Positions 29,019 through 36,109 of a DNA stretch of 64,000 bases are shown here, piece by piece. The number at the start of each line of letters is the position of its first letter. Position 1 is the first letter of the stretch. This DNA comes from Utricularia gibba (lineage: Eukaryota > Plantae > Magnoliophyta). Made by a program: the position numbers and the translations under genes. The stretch lies in the NCBI GenBank assembly GCA_002189035.1, contig NEEC01000023.1:186001-250000 (forward strand), written 5' to 3'. A model generated the notes under the pieces. The model had not been told where the DNA came from. It did not search any database and saw only the letters and a list, made by a program, of their open reading frames with translations.

Positions 29019-30059
29019 ATGCTGTGTTTGGTGAAATGTCGGGGTGTGTTCAAAAGATGTGGGTACGAACATATTTGGATTCTGAGATCGTTTGCGTCTG
29101 AATCTGCGACTGCACGGAGTCTTGGTTATTCAGATTCAGGGAATCATCTTAGTAGTGAAAACAGTGTTGCAGTCTTTTGGGATCTGGATAACAAGCCACC
29201 CAAGTCAATCCCTCTTTTCGATGCTGCCATCAGGTTAAAGAAAGTAGCAGAGAATTTGGGTTTTGTCAAGCATATGGTTGCATACGGCAATGGCCATGCT
29301 TTCAGCTATTCCTCTCCTTCAGCCAGGGTAGAAGGTGAGTTTGGAAACCGAAGAAAAACCTGGGATTTCATCAAGCCAAAGGAACCCTACGTATGTGGAG
29401 TTTGTGGGAGGAGATTTTACACTGCCGAGAAGCTGAACAATCACTTCAAAATTCATGAGTGTGAGCACACGAAACGGCTGAACCAGATTGAGTCATCAAG
29501 AGGGATGCGGCGAGTGAACTTGGTGGGCAAGTACTTCATGAAGATGGAGAAATACAGAAATGCTGCTAAACAGATGTCGATCCCTAAAGATGGCTATAGC
29601 CTTGCTGATGAGCTGAAGCAGGCAGGGTTCTCATTCACTCAGGCAGGCGGTGCGAGACAAAGAATTGTGGATATGATTGACAGAAGGGTAATCAACTGCT
29701 TGGTTCTTGTTTCCCATGATTCAGGTTATGAGGGTATGCTGAAGGAATGGAGGGATTGTTTGAGGACGGTTGTTGTAGGTGATACCAATGATGGAGCACT
29801 AAAAAGAATAGCAGATGCTTCCTTCTCTTGGCAGGAAATTATGATGGGGAAAGCCAGGAAAGAGGCTTTATCAGTTGTTGGTAAATGGAAAGACCAGGAT
29901 GTTTTGAAGAGGCTGGAGTGGAACTATGATCCTAAAACCGAGAAGAAATTTTATCGTCATGAAATGGAGAGCGAGGACTTCGAAAGCATTGGTTTGAATA
30001 GGGAAAGTGATGGTCCTTGGTGGAAGTTGCAACCAGAAAATGATGTCAAAAGACCTTGA
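29019..30059 (+). CDS. NYN (PIN-like)-domain protein with inserted C2H2 zinc finger, intronless
   Basis: VFWDLDNKPP NYN start, CGVCGRRFYTAEKLNNHFKIH (C-x2-C-x12-H-x3-H), LRTVVVGD..LKRIADASFSW. The N-terminus resembles an organellar transit peptide. Confidence 0.82.
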   Translation: MLCLVKCRGVFKRCGYEHIWILRSFASESATARSLGYSDSGNHLSSENSVAVFWDLDNKPPKSIPLFDAAIRLKKVAENLGFVKHMVAYGNGHAFSYSSPSARVEGEFGNRRKTWDFIKPKEPYVCGVCGRRFYTAEKLNNHFKIHECEHTKRLNQIESSRGMRRVNLVGKYFMKMEKYRNAAKQMSIPKDGYSLADELKQAGFSFTQAGGARQRIVDMIDRRVINCLVLVSHDSGYEGMLKEWRDCLRTVVVGDTNDGALKRIADASFSWQEIMMGKARKEALSVVGKWKDQDVLKRLEWNYDPKTEKKFYRHEMESEDFESIGLNRESDGPWWKLQPENDVKRP

Positions 30060-30710
30060 ATTTGTTTTCTGAATTATGCTCCTCACAGTACGCATTCAAG
30101 ATCCCTGAGAAGATGCCTGTTTGCATCTTGGCCGCCACTGACTTCCAGCAGAGCTCTTTACATGCAGCATCATTCATGTCGCCGGCTAAATCATCCTGCG
30201 CCTGCCGAGCTCTTGGTCTAGAGGCAAAGAAGCTCCTCTCAGTTCGAGAAAAAAAAGTGCTGTGATGCTGGTTACGAAAAAATTGAACTTGAAAATCCGA
30301 CTTCTTCGGCGGAGACAGAAAATTCGTTGGCCTTCCGTCTCCTCCGCCTCCCCGGCGGATGCATCCGACACATCGGCGCCGGTCATCTCCCCGGTCGGCA
30401 TCAAAGCCGCCTTCGACGGCGGAAGAACCCGATCACTCAGAGCGCGACATGCAAATTTCGGGCCGTTTCATAGAAACAGACTTTTATATTTTTAAAAAAT
30501 AATTATCATTTGATATTAAAATTGCAATCTTGGAGAGTTGTTTATTTTGAATTATCCTTAGAAAACAATCAATTTTAATTAATTCATCGACAAATAACAT
30601 TAAATGATTTTCATAAGGTCACACGCATCATAGTCTCCCTATTTTTTCATTATTACTATTATTATTATTTTCCAGAGATGCGGTTGAGCCTCAAGGCGGT
30701 GGCTCGCCCC

Positions 30711-31090
30711 TCAGTTGTGATCGGGGTTCGGTCCGCCCGGAACCAGCCGGAGCTCCGACGACCAGTCTCTCCCCTTCTCTGCACGGTAACCCCCCTCCGC
30801 TGCAATCCTCTTTGCCTCCAACAATATCTGTGCAAAAAATCAGACAAAGAGAAAAACAACGGTACGTGTTTTCATGCACAAGGTACTACCTGGCTACGCA
30901 GAACCCCTAGCTCCTCCACATTCCTGCTGCACTCTGCAATGGACAAACCGATCGTCGTTATACAGAAGATCATCGGACGGTTTTCACGTTAGACGGACTT
31001 ACCGACGACGGTGGTGGTGGCGGCGAATACGAGCACGACCAAGACAGCAATCAGACAGACGGCAACAGCCTTAGAAGAACCCGCAGCCAT
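30711..31090 (-). CDS. CLE peptide precursor, CLV3-type three-exon gene (copy A), 82 aa, CLE motif RLVPGGPNPDHN
   Basis: Exons 31090-31003 (88 nt), 30933-30890 (44 nt), 30827-30711 (117 nt), GT-AG introns. Protein: MAAGSSKAVAVCLIAVLVVLVFAATTTVVECSRNVEELGVLRSQILLEAKRIAAEGGYRAEKGRDWSSELRLVPGGPNPDHN*. Not in the ORF track. Confidence 0.88.
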
Positions 31091-31147
31091 TCTCATTGAG
31101 ATTCCTTCCCCGATGGCGGTGGAGGTGAAATGAAATGCGGCTGGGGA

Positions 31148-31155
31148 TATTTATA
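31148..31155 (-). promoter_or_regulatory. TATA box of CLE copy A
   Basis: TATAAATA on the minus strand, ~58 nt upstream of ATG 31090. Confidence 0.65.
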
Positions 31156-31886
31156 GATCGATCTGATAAATGGAAGGTATATACTGTGCATTTGCATTTC
31201 ACTTGTCGTGATTTGTGTATTTCCCCATAAATGGGAATGAATATTTGGAATATTAATTGATTTGATTCTCTAATTAATTGCTTTCTATTTACTCGAAGAT
31301 ATCACACCAAACAGCCATCTTCTTTCCCACTTACTGAAAATTAAAAATTTTAATTTTAATTTAGTATTTCTCAATTTCATAATTCTTTTAATTTTTAAAT
31401 AATTACGAAAGAAACAAGGAAATAAAATGAATTTAACTTTTTCAATTTAAATAAATAAAATAAAATATAATTAATTTTTTAGGTAATATTTAGTTATTGA
31501 CATTAGAAATAATATTGATTGATTTAAAAAAATAAGAAATAATAAATTCATATATATGAAGTTTAAAAAAACTTTTCTTTCAAACTTTTTATAAACTAAC
31601 AACTAAATATTCTATAGTTTATAATATTAAATTTAAATCTGTATGTTCAACCTCAGATCAATCAAACACATACAATTGCACTGGGATTCATGAGTTTTTA
31701 GCAGTGGACGAGTCTCTTATGGCGTTAGCTTTAGTTCTGGGTGCGTGGTAGACTAAGTTAGAAAACAAGCTTTCTACATTGCACTACTTCTATCAAAACT
31801 ACAACCAACATGCTATACTCGAGTTTTCCGATGGAGCTTCCCAAAAAGAGAACTACTGAGGTTGAAGATGCAGAACAATAGAACCA

Positions 31887-32361
31887 TTATGGAACTTGTG
31901 GCCTCTGAGGATCCTGGCCAGTATGGTGCAACGGGTCAGGCCCTGCGGGAACCTTTCTCAGCTTCAAAGTCTCTGCTATCTGTTTCTTCATCCCTCCAGC
32001 CTGACTGTTCTCCATCGCCACCTTCCTCGCTTCCAGGAGCAACTGAAAGGCTCACCACTTAAAGTTAGTTATACATCCATGTAGAAAAGTAAATGGGATC
32101 AGTTCACATGCATACCTCCCCGCGCAGAAATTGTAACCTGTCCAAACTCCTACTGCACCCTGTGAAAATAGCATATAATCACCTTTTCAGTACACAACAA
32201 ATGCTTGCAGCTATTTATTGTTAGGGAAATAGATGTTTTTTTCGTATATTGATGATTGCATATAGCAGCTAACCAGCAACATCTTTGAGGGAGAAGAAGC
32301 AGACAAGCATCAGCAAGGAGGAAAGAGCAGCTCTTGAAGTGGAACCCCTATTTCTTGCCAT
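31887..32361 (-). CDS. CLV3: CLAVATA3-like CLE peptide precursor (copy B), 95 aa, CLE motif RKVPAGPDPLHH plus C-terminal extension
   Basis: Exons 32361-32274 (88 nt), 32159-32116 (44 nt), 32042-31887 (156 nt). Protein: MARNRGSTSRAALSSLLMLVCFFSLKDVAGCSRSLDRLQFLRGELLLEARKVAMENSQAGGMKKQIAETLKLRKVPAGPDPLHHTGQDPQRPQVP*. The three-exon layout and P-rich tail are CLV3 hallmarks. Not in the ORF track. Confidence 0.88.
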
Positions 32362-32427
32362 TGGAACGACCAGTCAATCTTTATTACCAAAGAATATGAG
32401 ATGTTTCTGAATAAATGGGGAGAGACG

Positions 32428-32435
32428 TATATATA
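32428..32435 (-). promoter_or_regulatory. TATA box of CLV3-like copy B
   Basis: TATATATA ~70 nt upstream of ATG 32361. Confidence 0.55.
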
Positions 32436-34083
32436 ATGGGAGGAAGCAAAAGACAGGGGAGAAGAAATGATTGCATGAAGCAGCAATTTTGGAGTAAGAT
32501 TACGGCTATGAAATGACTGTGTAGTATGTGCAAGTAAAGTTTCTTTTTTTACCAAAAAAGAGGAAAGGAGTAAACCTTAATGATCATCCTCCTATGGGAT
32601 TCTCTTGGCTGTTGTGCTTTTTTGACGGCGCCGCATAGGCTTGTCACATGACATGGATGACGTCGTGGGGTTTCTGAACGTTTCCTCTGTCGTGTTTTGA
32701 TTTTGGTTGCTCTGAGTTTCGAGGCGCAACTCGAGATTGATGCGATGGCTGTAAGGATATGCACTGGGAAACTGTCATGTCATGGGGATTCTATGTTTGG
32801 TGCTAGCACGTCTCAATACTTGCATGGGTTTCTCTGATTTTTCCCCAAAATCCCTTCTGCTCTTCCATGCTGTCTTGGCTACAAAAGGGAAAAATCCAGA
32901 GAATTAGTGTGACATGAACAGTGATATGAATGTGTGTTTTCAAGTGAAGGCAGCATTTTAGGCGTCAGAAGTTTGGGAATCTCTAATGAAATGGATTGTC
33001 TCTAAGGATGTGGCTTTCCAATATCATCAGCCTTTCAGATGGATATCAATCACACAGCAGAGACAACAGCCTCCTGCTGTTGTTCTGTTCTGCAGGGGCA
33101 GCAGCCTTCTGGATCTTGTCATGTTGGACACGTTCACAGAATCGAGTTTGAACCCACTTACAGGATGAAGAGAACAGCAATGCAGGGACATGATCTCGGC
33201 GTGTTGCTCTGGCTGCTGCAATGGCTTGAAGGGGAGAAACCCCCGCAGTCTGTGCACAGGATGACAGAGCCTGGTCTCGGCAACAACTTCTCACGATCCT
33301 CCGGGATCCGCTAGAGTATGCAGGAGAGTGAACACATTCCTCTCATTATTTTGTCAGCAGCTGCTTACTGGATAAACACAATAACAAAAGAAGACATATA
33401 AAGGATGCTATACAGTTACTCTACAGTGTCATTCTTGTGTTCATGCTTAAGCGTGTCCCTTATCTGTGTCCCGGCTTCCAAAGCAAGTGGAGAACAAGGA
33501 TCCAAAATCTACAGATGTGAAATCAGGCGATTCAAATGCTATATTTTTTTTATTTTAGAAAAAAATGAGACAGATTTAATCCATTGGGAGCCTGTGATCT
33601 GCCATCCAGCACTGATGGACAAGCAAGCAGTGTGAAATTTACACAGAACCTGTGATCTTCATTTGGTATATTTGAGTACTGTAGCTTTACAATTCTGGGA
33701 TACCTTAGACAGAATTTTACAATTCGCATATCTGGTATTTGCATAGAGCAAGCCACACACAGATCTCAGATTGTAAGCAACTGTGTTTGCATGTGTGAAT
33801 AGCTTCACCAGCCCCTTGGTTCTGATGTTGGTGCTAGAGCTTGAAATGAACCAGTTGTAGCGGCAGCAAGTAGCTGTACGCCGACTATCTACCAAATGAA
33901 AAGGACTCTATTTAACACATGAGACAATCATGATAATCAGAAAGCTAAATTTCATGCCTTGTCAACTAGAAACACAACATTATCACATGCAATATAGAAC
34001 TGCATTCCACGGTGCACAGAGGAAAGACCAATAAAAGAAAAAGGGGTCACCTTCTCTATATACATATTTATTCATAACGAGTG

Positions 34084-35160
34084 TCAGTCGTTGAAGATAA
34101 CTGAATCTGCGAGCTCCATCAGGGGGTTCAAGCAATCAGGAGAGAATTTCCGAGCGAACATATAAGAATAAGTGGAGTTCGATTCCCTGAGCTGGTGAAT
34201 TAGCTCAGGAGAAATTTCAGCAGGCTGATAAGTATGTGGTTGCCCAAATCTACTACCGGTTGTCAGTGTAAAATGTGTACAACCATTTGGATCCTGCATA
34301 GATAACAAAGTTGGAAGATAGTGCTCTTCAGGGAAGCAAGCATCCTCTTTGATGCAAGGCATCTTAAACTTGCGCCATAGATTTGTATCACTGATCACCA
34401 TCAAAGAGTGCTTTCTAGTAAGAACGAAAAACTGTGATCCAGAACGAAATTCATCAAACGGGATTTCAGGAAGCATCACGCCCTCCCCTCTAGCATTATA
34501 CCTATCCCACAGACTGCTCTCATTGTCCTGAATCTCAATGTAGCTTGAGAATTCCAATTTCATGGACAGTCGCCCCAGGTCAAACAGAAAGTTATACAAG
34601 TAATGAAACGAGTGAAGTGGGATACAGTGCTGTGAGACCATTGCGAAGTAGGCATTGGACGGATCATCCAGCATAGCGGTGGCTAAGAGGCGGCGAGCGG
34701 CGGAGATGAGAGTCGGGGAGGAGGATTGGGTTCTCTTGGAAGGTATAGATCTGCCTTCGAAGACACCTGAAAGAGTGATCTTAACAGAAGGGTCAGCGTG
34801 GATGTAGATATTGTAAAGTCTCGAAGTGACATTCGTAAAGAACCGTTCCCACAAAGGAGCGAAATGGAGGGGGGAGTCCGTGAGAAAAAGAAAAGCGATC
34901 TTGGGGCGACGGAGGGAAGCGGAAAGATGGGATTTTGCGGAAGGGAGACGCGCGCTACGGCGGGGAAATTTAGCCGAATCCATAGCGATAGCCTTGTGGA
35001 AGAGCGATAAGTCATCGAGCTCGTCAGGCACGGAGATGGAGATCCGGCCGATGGGTAGAAATCTAGGACCGACGAAGAAGATCAACGGCGGCACAGAAAC
35101 GAGAAGAATGAGTATCGGGATCAGTAGGGAGGAGGAGGAGGAGGAGCAATTCGAGGTCAT
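34084..35160 (-). CDS. Core-2/I-branching beta-1,6-N-acetylglucosaminyltransferase family (GT14-like / DUF266) protein, intronless
   Basis: TM anchor; KIAFLFLT..PLHFAPLWERFF, YNIYIHADP, LISAARRLLA, GSQFFVL, CFPEEHYLPTLL, MFARKF. ATG at 35160 (the ORF-track start at 35166 is GTG). Confidence 0.9.
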   Translation of the reverse strand: MTSNCSSSSSSLLIPILILLVSVPPLIFFVGPRFLPIGRISISVPDELDDLSLFHKAIAMDSAKFPRRSARLPSAKSHLSASLRRPKIAFLFLTDSPLHFAPLWERFFTNVTSRLYNIYIHADPSVKITLSGVFEGRSIPSKRTQSSSPTLISAARRLLATAMLDDPSNAYFAMVSQHCIPLHSFHYLYNFLFDLGRLSMKLEFSSYIEIQDNESSLWDRYNARGEGVMLPEIPFDEFRSGSQFFVLTRKHSLMVISDTNLWRKFKMPCIKEDACFPEEHYLPTLLSMQDPNGCTHFTLTTGSRFGQPHTYQPAEISPELIHQLRESNSTYSYMFARKFSPDCLNPLMELADSVIFND

Positions 35161-36109
35161 GGTCACAGATGAAGAGGGAATACAGTCCCCAGTCGATCGG
35201 ATTCTGCAACAGTACTACCCGGAGAAGTAGCGGATCTGGTCACCGTCGGCGGTGGTAGCGCTTCGATTGGTTCCTAGGGATTTTGGATTGACGATGGATG
35301 ATTTTTGCTGGCGAATTCGGAGATGGCAGTTATGGACCGGGGCCCACCCTATAATTACAAAACGTGTAAATAAAATGGACTCTTGAGCAAAGTCAACAGG
35401 CAGGCATCTCCTGCTTGGTCACTCCACTTTCTAAATACGGGTGCTTTTTCCCATAATTTTCATAAATATTTGTCCACAAAAATAGTCGATACCATAAAAC
35501 ACCCTAAAACCAACTTAAATTATTTTTTACCATGGTTGAAGAAAAAAATCACAATAATGGAGCATAATGAACGACTCAACATCTTGTTGCAGTATATTGT
35601 TCATTTCGAACATATAATCCTCATGATTTTACATTTTATTCTTTTGTAAGAAGGTTTAATACAATATTAAGAAGATTCTTATATTTAAATATGTTCTCTT
35701 CCTCACTCATTACCAATATATGATATCGTTTTTAGATTATTCACCACTATTTTCCTCTTTTTAGATACTCAACTCTCTTATTGAATAGTACCTCATTCTA
35801 CTATTGACATGAGTTCGTATATGCCTCTAACATCAATTGTACAGTTCATTGTTTTAATCATACAAAATTAAACCCAAGACTGCTCGAAGCCAATACTAAT
35901 ATTTTTACCTGCATCATCTATAATTAAAAATAAAACTTAGAATATGAATGTGCATTAAGAGTATTTGAATTTGTTTTCAAATAAAAATTCAAAAAAATGG
36001 AAGTGGGAATTTCGTTTTGGGCTGCGGCCTGTGACTCCAAGCCCGGTTACTGATGTGGATTGCGGATAAGGGAACGGTGAGTGCATCTCTCTGCACTCGG
36101 GTTGGTTCA

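Follow-up and report, generated by a model that had tools for sequence, protein, structure and literature searches.

The locus described here raises the question of whether a plant genome holds two copies of the CLAVATA3 (CLV3) gene side by side and, if so, what the second copy is. CLV3 limits the stem-cell pool of the shoot through CLV1/BAM receptors and WUS. The region concerned covers positions 30711-32361, on the minus strand, of a 64-kb stretch of Utricularia gibba DNA (hereafter the window, whose numbering is used throughout). A preliminary description of this DNA had proposed that the region contains two hidden CLV3-like genes, representing an old tandem duplication of the stem-cell signal of which both copies were kept. 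The account favoured here, with moderate confidence, is that of a CLV3 locus comprising an orthologue (gene A) and an old, lineage-specific tandem paralogue (gene B), which was long kept by selection and would now encode a weakly or conditionally expressed ligand.

Two head-to-tail CLE precursor genes of three exons each were identified on the minus strand, 790 bp apart, at the coordinates and with the sequence originally claimed for them. Gene A (32361-31887) encodes a protein of 95 amino acids and has coding exons of 88, 44 and 156 nt (stop included; 32274-32361, 32116-32159 and 31887-32042), separated by introns of 114 nt (32160-32273) and 73 nt (32043-32115) with pyrimidine-rich acceptors. 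Its first exon encodes the signal peptide MARNRGSTSRAALSSLLMLVCFFSLKDVA and supplies the first base of codon 30, the second encodes (G)CSRSLDRLQFLRGE and the third runs from LLLEARKVA to RKVPAGPDPLHHTGQDPQRPQVP before the stop. The C-terminal end of the product is LKLRKVPAGPDPLHHTGQDPQRPQVP, and the CLE dodecapeptide RKVPAGPDPLHH is located at 31923-31958. Gene B (31096-30711) encodes 84 amino acids from its first in-frame ATG (31096) or 82 from the second (31090). It consists of coding exons of 94 nt (88 nt from the second ATG; 31003-31096), 44 nt (30890-30933; (E)CSRNVEELGVLRSQ) and 117 nt (stop included; 30711-30827; ILLEAKRIA to DWSSELRLVPGGPNPDHN), with predicted introns of 69 nt (30934-31002, GTAAGT..CAG) and 62 nt (30828-30889, GTAGTA..CAG). 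Its product ends in SSELRLVPGGPNPDHN, with the dodecapeptide RLVPGGPNPDHN (30714-30749) placed directly before the stop. In both genes the introns are of the GT..AG type and have phase 1 followed by phase 0. The two genes had been said to agree in the lengths of exons 1 and 2 (88 and 44 nt) as well as in phase; this holds for exon 2 and for the phases, but for exon 1 it applies only if gene B starts at its second ATG.

Each gene was found to possess a TATA box of its own, as described: TATATATA at 32435-32428 for gene A, with an RNA contig starting 21-28 nt downstream at 32407 (X1, see below), and TATAAATA at 31155-31148 for gene B, 52 nt upstream of its first ATG. The spacer between the genes (31097-31886; 28% G+C) acts at once as promoter for B and as 3' flank for A, and the only repeats in it are of the low-complexity AT-rich kind. 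Both precursors are small and lie within the range of the CLE family (about 80-120 amino acids). They begin with charged residues followed by 15-20 hydrophobic ones, a signal peptide that can be read directly from the translation, and carry the CLE residues R1, P4, G6, P7, P9 and H11 in a motif at or near the C-terminus. In a CLE-pattern scan of all six frames of the 64 kb, RKVPAGPDPLHH and RLVPGGPNPDHN were the only CLE motifs to be identified, one for each gene as had been stated. The full proteins have no match in a collection of 5.8 billion proteins (by word-indexed search, for which the motif is too short to reach significance), in line with the view that annotation has missed both genes.

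Gene A is almost certainly an expressed CLV3 orthologue on account of its CLV3 architecture, its proline-rich tail and the matches of its third exon. A phmmer search of 1.84 billion representative proteins with the exon-3 peptide (51 amino acids) returned fifteen matches at E<=1e-3, the best at 1.5e-6. Twelve of these are single-motif plant CLV3-type precursors of 59-113 amino acids, ending in ...[LP]R.VP[AS]GPDP[LM]HH.G..P.KP..P, one of them encoded on chromosome 2 of Buddleja alternifolia; the other three (149-161 amino acids) contain several CLE motifs each. The dodecapeptide of gene A (R1 K2 V3 P4 A5 G6 P7 D8 P9 L10 H11 H12) fits the CLV3 pattern R-x-V-P-[AS]-G-P-D-P-L-H-H, and is identical at 11 of 12 positions to the CLV3 peptide of tomato (RGVPAGPDPLHH, encoded on chromosome 11; PMC9670457, Table 1). 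The ..G..P.KP..P extension is present behind it, reading TGQDPQRPQVP in gene A and NGQDPKKPRTP in the orthologues.

The exon structures of orthologues were solved at their own loci, which gave three full-length models (L001-L003) with coding exons of 76/44/165, 82/56/168 and 76/65/168 nt, as compared with 88/44/156 nt for gene A and 88 (94)/44/117 nt for gene B. In all three models a phase-1 intron is immediately followed by a Cys codon, exon 2 is short, and a phase-0 intron comes after ..[HN]RK; exon 3 opens with LLLE.K or LFLE.K in two cases and with VLSK in L003. Genes A and B share these phases and boundary residues, and the proposal that both are CLV3-type genes and not just any CLE genes is borne out by this architecture, common to the orthologues of other species. 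Comparison with eudicot CLV3 orthologues (Arabidopsis CLV3, SlCLV3 and the public precursors P0001-P0015, including that of Buddleja alternifolia) shows that gene A has the same three exons, intron positions and phases, together with a signal peptide, the Cys opening exon 2, LLLE.K opening exon 3 and the proline-rich tail. It differs in the flank before the peptide, which is EDWELR in these orthologues and ETLKLR in gene A, and its identity to other CLV3 orthologues is only 24-41%, in keeping with fast evolution of the lineage.

Pfam proved uninformative for this group of precursors. Neither exon-3 peptide, of A or of B, had a match at E<=1 (PF27922, CLE_plant), nor did the accepted orthologues P0004, P0006 and P0011; the precomputed PF27922 matches for P0006 and P0011 are only 'weak', and the model is too insensitive. 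It was also observed that several public models of CLV3 orthologues have wrong N-termini (P0001-P0003 and P0014; L005:10001-10356), with two exons or odd leaders devoid of a signal peptide. Multi-exon CLE genes thus appear to be mis-annotated often.

Transcription was assessed with assembler contigs of four RNA runs from three studies, which are small, have their tissues given as codes and do not retain rare transcripts, over positions 30500-32600. Single contigs cover gene A in X1 (432 nt), X2 (679 nt) and X3 (179 nt), and RNA of gene A is present in six runs. The junction of intron 2 (32042/32116) is crossed by contigs of X1, X2 and X3, and that of intron 1 (32158/9 to 32273/4) is crossed exactly in X1 and X2, and with one base changed in X3. 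As the RNA contigs skip both introns, both junctions predicted for gene A are real. The contigs of X2 and X1 extend to 31753 and 31789, respectively, giving gene A a 3' untranslated region of at least 134 nt (31753-31886).

Further variants of the gene A transcript were noted. An upstream exon ending at 32576 (...CATTAAG/GT; 3' end at 32576-32600) is joined within exon 1 of gene A to acceptors at 32353 in X2 (depth 7) and, from 32575, at 32346 in X3 (depth 2), both joints being GT..AG on the minus strand. These acceptors lie past the ATG at 32361 and the resulting isoform is without the CLV3 start codon; it has an in-frame TGA three codons before the junction and an upstream open reading frame (ORF) of 5 codons across it. 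Possible explanations are a 5' isoform of greater length, transcription running in from upstream, or a regulatory RNA without coding function. The remaining joint (32405>32575) is not canonical and perhaps arose during assembly. In X3, a second gene A contig (31902-32013; depth 4.6 as against 5.9 for the exact one) shows four differences, namely three synonymous changes (K64, K74 and P81, two of them within codons of the dodecapeptide) and one replacement, Q65E; it represents either another allele or a second copy of very recent origin, and the changes are distributed as expected under purifying selection on the peptide. The base changed in the intron 1 junction of X3 is the first of exon 2 (32159) and turns codon 30 from GGG (Gly) into GAG (Glu). 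Glu before the Cys is also found in gene B and in several orthologues.

For gene B, descent from CLV3 is indicated by CLV3-specific features located outside the peptide, by the similarity of its linker to that of gene A, by the flank of its peptide and by its placement in a tree, and we regard its assignment as a CLV3-derived paralogue as close to certain. The features outside the peptide are the Cys opening a 44-nt exon 2, the ILLEAKR opening exon 3 and the CLV3 intron phases. When signal peptide and CLE motif were removed and the linkers of A and B aligned locally (BLOSUM62), a score of 68 was obtained, about 10 standard deviations above that of shuffled sequences (21.4 +/- 4.4), and none of 5000 shuffles reached it; the two linkers are thus homologous, as had been stated. 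Alignment with the orthologues shows that the DW..ELR flank before the peptide (EDWELR in orthologues) is kept in gene B and lost in gene A, and that CSR and LLEA[RK][KR][VI]A are common to A and B and absent from the orthologues aligned. In a maximum-likelihood tree of 13 sequences, which included neither CLE9 nor CLE40-type sequences, A and B are sisters (ultrafast bootstrap 89, SH-aLRT 90) with branch lengths of 0.98 and 0.91. Placement of the two precursors in unrelated CLE clades, named beforehand as grounds for abandoning the proposal, is therefore not what was found. Gene B is filed as a paralogue and not as a CLV3 orthologue because its dodecapeptide departs from the CLV3 pattern at Gly5, Asn8, Asp10 and Asn12. 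Judging from these comparisons, it originated by duplication in this lineage once the species sampled had branched off.

The peptide of gene B differs from that of gene A at five of its twelve positions (K2L, A5G, D8N, L10D and H12N). It is without the CLV3 tail, the stop lying right behind the motif, and the DNA past this stop shows no clear similarity to the tail of A by eye. Most CLE genes likewise stop immediately behind their motif. Residues described as critical by alanine-scanning of Arabidopsis CLV3 are R, P, G, D, P and H (as cited in PMC4776436); in 12-residue numbering these are R1, P4, G6, D8, P9 and H11, and gene B keeps all of them but D8. Many active CLE peptides normally have Asn at position 8 (tabulated in PMC4776436 and PMC9670457), and an acidic position 10 is known as Glu in some TDIF-like peptides (HEVPSGANPESN). 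Neither a GP[ND]P[DE]H[NH] peptide nor the exact peptides of A and B were found in the literature searched. With five positions changed and the tail lost, the original proposal that gene B still carries the stem-cell signal is conjectural. The same holds for the compensation or subfunctionalisation of the two copies that had been suggested as possible.

The duplication is old, given that silent sites are saturated and that no DNA-level repeat links the gene units or the promoters of A and B, between which short, probably chance matches alone were seen. Protein identity between A and B is approximately 33%, ungapped identity of the exons is 38-64% and the introns gave no convincing alignment. 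Synonymous divergence (dS, NG86) exceeds 1.2 and is saturated. The ratio of non-synonymous to synonymous divergence (dN/dS) is 0.33 for the linker (26 codons), 0.19 for linker and peptide together (38 codons) and 0.89 for the signal peptide. In a simulation of neutral decay of gene B, the ATG, an uninterrupted reading frame and all four splice dinucleotides survived in 19%, 2.0% and 0.09% of cases at 0.1, 0.25 and 0.5 substitutions per site, respectively; only substitutions were simulated, and indels would lower these figures further. From the low dN/dS and the low neutral survival it follows that gene B has been under purifying selection for most of its history, and it is probably a functional gene still. 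The old tandem duplication of the preliminary description is thus upheld by saturated dS, the lack of a DNA repeat and the sister placement of A and B.

The surroundings of the pair indicate the kind of lineage concerned. A single-exon gene encoding an NYN-domain/C2H2 protein of 346 amino acids is located at 29019-30059 on the plus strand, 650 bp beyond gene B and convergent with it. The exact product has no record in the public collection, and its best matches, at an identity of only 53-63%, come from the Lamiales Handroanthus, Sesamum, Paulownia, Rehmannia, Orobanche, Buddleja, Salvia and Erythranthe. On this basis, the lineage of the window is a fast-evolving one of the Lamiales that has no close relative in the collections searched; the compact genome of a carnivorous member of the Lentibulariaceae might match this. 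In Buddleja, the orthologues of CLV3 and of the NYN gene lie on the same chromosome, approximately 190 kb apart. At the CLV3 loci of Buddleja (L001) and of another species (L003/L004, two assemblies), CLV3 is followed by a pentatricopeptide repeat gene and a leucine-rich repeat receptor kinase gene on the opposite strand. No such microsynteny was seen in the window, whose called neighbours are different. A single-exon ORF of 360 amino acids was also noted 1.7 kb upstream of gene A (34084-35166, minus strand).

Under the favoured account, gene A is transcribed from its TATA promoter and spliced as predicted to give a secreted precursor, whose RKVPAGPDPLHH peptide would, by its orthology, be the ligand that restrains WUSCHEL via CLV1/BAM-type receptors. 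Gene B derives from the same ancestral CLV3 gene and has stayed under selection for most of its history, keeping a signal peptide, a 44-nt exon 2 that opens with Cys, LLEA-K at the start of exon 3, the ancestral DW..ELR flank and R1/P4/G6/P7/P9/H11. Its peptide has been retuned (Asn8, Asp10, Asn12, no tail), and its RNA escapes detection in every case where that of A is seen. Gene B most likely encodes a secreted CLE ligand with weak or conditional expression, perhaps on standby in the manner of CLE9 beside CLV3 in Solanaceae, or perhaps transferred to a different tissue or receptor; that it supplies CLV3 in a second, equal dose is less probable.

Several results weigh against this account, those on expression among them. 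The depth of gene B is zero in the four RNA runs that contain gene A (assembler contigs of small runs), and its two junctions have no transcript in the available RNA contigs and are hence predictions only. Sampled words of 30600-31150 (gene B) were recovered at 1.00 in four DNA runs and at 0.00 in seven same-species RNA runs, listed via their species label in a search not restricted to RNA. Gene B is therefore undetected in RNA; its silence is not proven by this, as the non-detection is weak evidence in both directions. Of the spliced transcripts expected at four predicted junctions, both of gene A were found and neither of gene B, and the claim that both copies were kept holds for their intact ORFs but, in the RNA runs available, transcription is seen for gene A only. 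In addition, the tree joining A and B has about 100 columns and its support is moderate, and the dN/dS values and the simulation reflect the whole A-B path, a long-term history compatible with a recent loss of function. No orthologue of gene B was found by word-indexed protein search, and at five loci of four other species CLV3 is not accompanied by a second CLE motif at any distance up to 10 kb. The NYN orthologues of Buddleja, Handroanthus and Erythranthe likewise have no CLE motif in the 10 kb to either side, and so the tandem CLV3 pair is, as far as this sample shows, not a general feature of the Lamiales. Finally, Asp was not found at position 10 of any CLE peptide in the literature searched, and could be disabling.

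These points bear on the possibility that gene B is a dead or dying duplicate, one that was functional for a long time and is now silent or produces an inactive peptide (L10D, tail lost) while having no obvious disabling mutation as yet. Such a fate is conceivable though rather unlikely. It would account for the detection of A in six runs and of B in none, for a dodecapeptide changed at five of twelve positions with an acidic position 10 that has no counterpart in the literature searched, and for the failure to retrieve any homologue of B; moreover, CLV3 duplicates are known to pseudogenise repeatedly (PMC11964936). Yet the ORF, the start codon, the four splice dinucleotides with good extended consensus and the TATAAATA box are all intact, the branch of B is no longer than that of A, dN/dS is well below 1 over linker and CLE motif, and an end right behind the motif is usual in CLE genes. 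The residues R1, P4, G6, P9 and H11, critical in CLV3 as cited in PMC4776436, are intact as well. Should gene B instead be no spare CLV3 but a neofunctionalised ligand, its Asn8/Asp10/Asn12 peptide having switched receptor or acting as a natural antagonist of CLV3 signalling, and be kept in tandem so as to share the regulatory neighbourhood of CLV3, the pair would form a two-peptide module for tuning stem-cell number in a fast-evolving Lamiales lineage with a possibly unconventional shoot body plan; this reading is improbable.

It is more improbable still that A and B are both at work in one stem-cell niche with redundant roles, as a dosage pair like the near-identical CLV3a/CLV3b of Solanum prinophyllum. 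The tandem arrangement, the shared architecture, the intact ORFs and the precedent itself (PMC11964936) would agree with this, but proteins of such low identity, dodecapeptides that differ at so many positions, the failure to detect B in all RNA runs containing A and promoters with no similarity at the DNA level do not. An origin of gene B in another CLE clade (CLE40 type or the RLVP.GPNPLHN group), with its position beside CLV3 due to chance, is hardly credible. Taken alone, its dodecapeptide is closer to peptides of the R[LI]VPGGPNPLHN type (tomato CLE38 and CLE5, poplar PtCLE45) than to CLV3, and matches RIVPGGPNPLHN at 10 of 12 positions; these peptides, however, have Leu10 where B has Asp10, and the precursor and gene structure of B are of the CLV3 type. 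The phase-1 intron before Cys, the 44-nt exon 2, the phase-0 intron before ILLEAK and the DW..ELR before the motif all argue against such an origin, as do the likeness of its linker to that of A and their sister placement in a tree that included no CLE40-type sequences. The resemblance to R[LI]VPGGPNPLHN peptides is probably due to convergent drift of the peptide.

With the account of an expressed orthologue and a long-kept paralogue, the genome gains its missing CLAVATA3 gene model, with RNA-supported junctions, plus an unannotated CLV3-derived neighbour, and the locus serves as a reminder that routine annotation misses or mis-models multi-exon CLE genes. In Solanaceae, CLV3 paralogues set the strength of the buffering of stem-cell control, which accounts for the differing outcomes of the same CLV3 mutation among species (PMC11964936; bioRxiv 10.1101/2022.01.03.474791). 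A much older and independent tandem pair in the Lamiales, with intact ORFs and an Asp10 peptide that has no precedent, would offer a natural test of how long such pairs persist, and of whether a spare copy comes to stand by or takes up a different tissue or receptor.

Two of the closest systems described are those of Solanaceae. CLE9 is a lineage-specific CLV3 duplicate that is weakly expressed in the wild type and buffers the clv3 phenotype by 'active compensation'; in clv3 mutants of petunia its expression goes up more than 15-fold, and it has been degraded or lost repeatedly within the family, and weak CLV3 paralogues that rise on loss of CLV3 have been reported for tomato, petunia and groundcherry (bioRxiv 10.1101/2022.01.03.474791). 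Gene B resembles CLE9, which is expressed far below CLV3 in the wild type, in being a CLV3 paralogue of old, lineage-specific origin whose dodecapeptide has diverged, and in escaping detection in runs where A is seen (weak evidence, from assembler contigs of small runs). The two systems differ in that CLE9 (peptide REAPMSPDPLHH in tomato) and CLV3 are located on tomato chromosomes 6 and 11, respectively (PMC9670457), whereas A and B stand in tandem, 790 bp apart, and in that CLE9 keeps positions 8, 10 and 12 of the dodecapeptide, which gene B changes. The grouping of A with B apart from the CLV3 of other species, in a tree without CLE9, suggests that their duplication was independent of that which gave rise to CLV3 and CLE9.

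Local CLV3 copies standing side by side, as in A/B, have been described among the spiny Solanum species, namely CLV3a/b in S. prinophyllum and CLV3a with a pseudogene b in S. aethiopicum, where young tandem duplications restored buffering that was then lost again (PMC11964936). Those duplicates are young, near-identical or visibly pseudogenised, and separated by transposons and resistance genes; in A/B, by contrast, silent sites are saturated, both ORFs are intact and a spacer of 790 bp is all that lies between the genes. The A/B pair is thus tandem like the Solanum duplicates and old and peptide-diverged like CLE9, a known theme of which it is an independent case.

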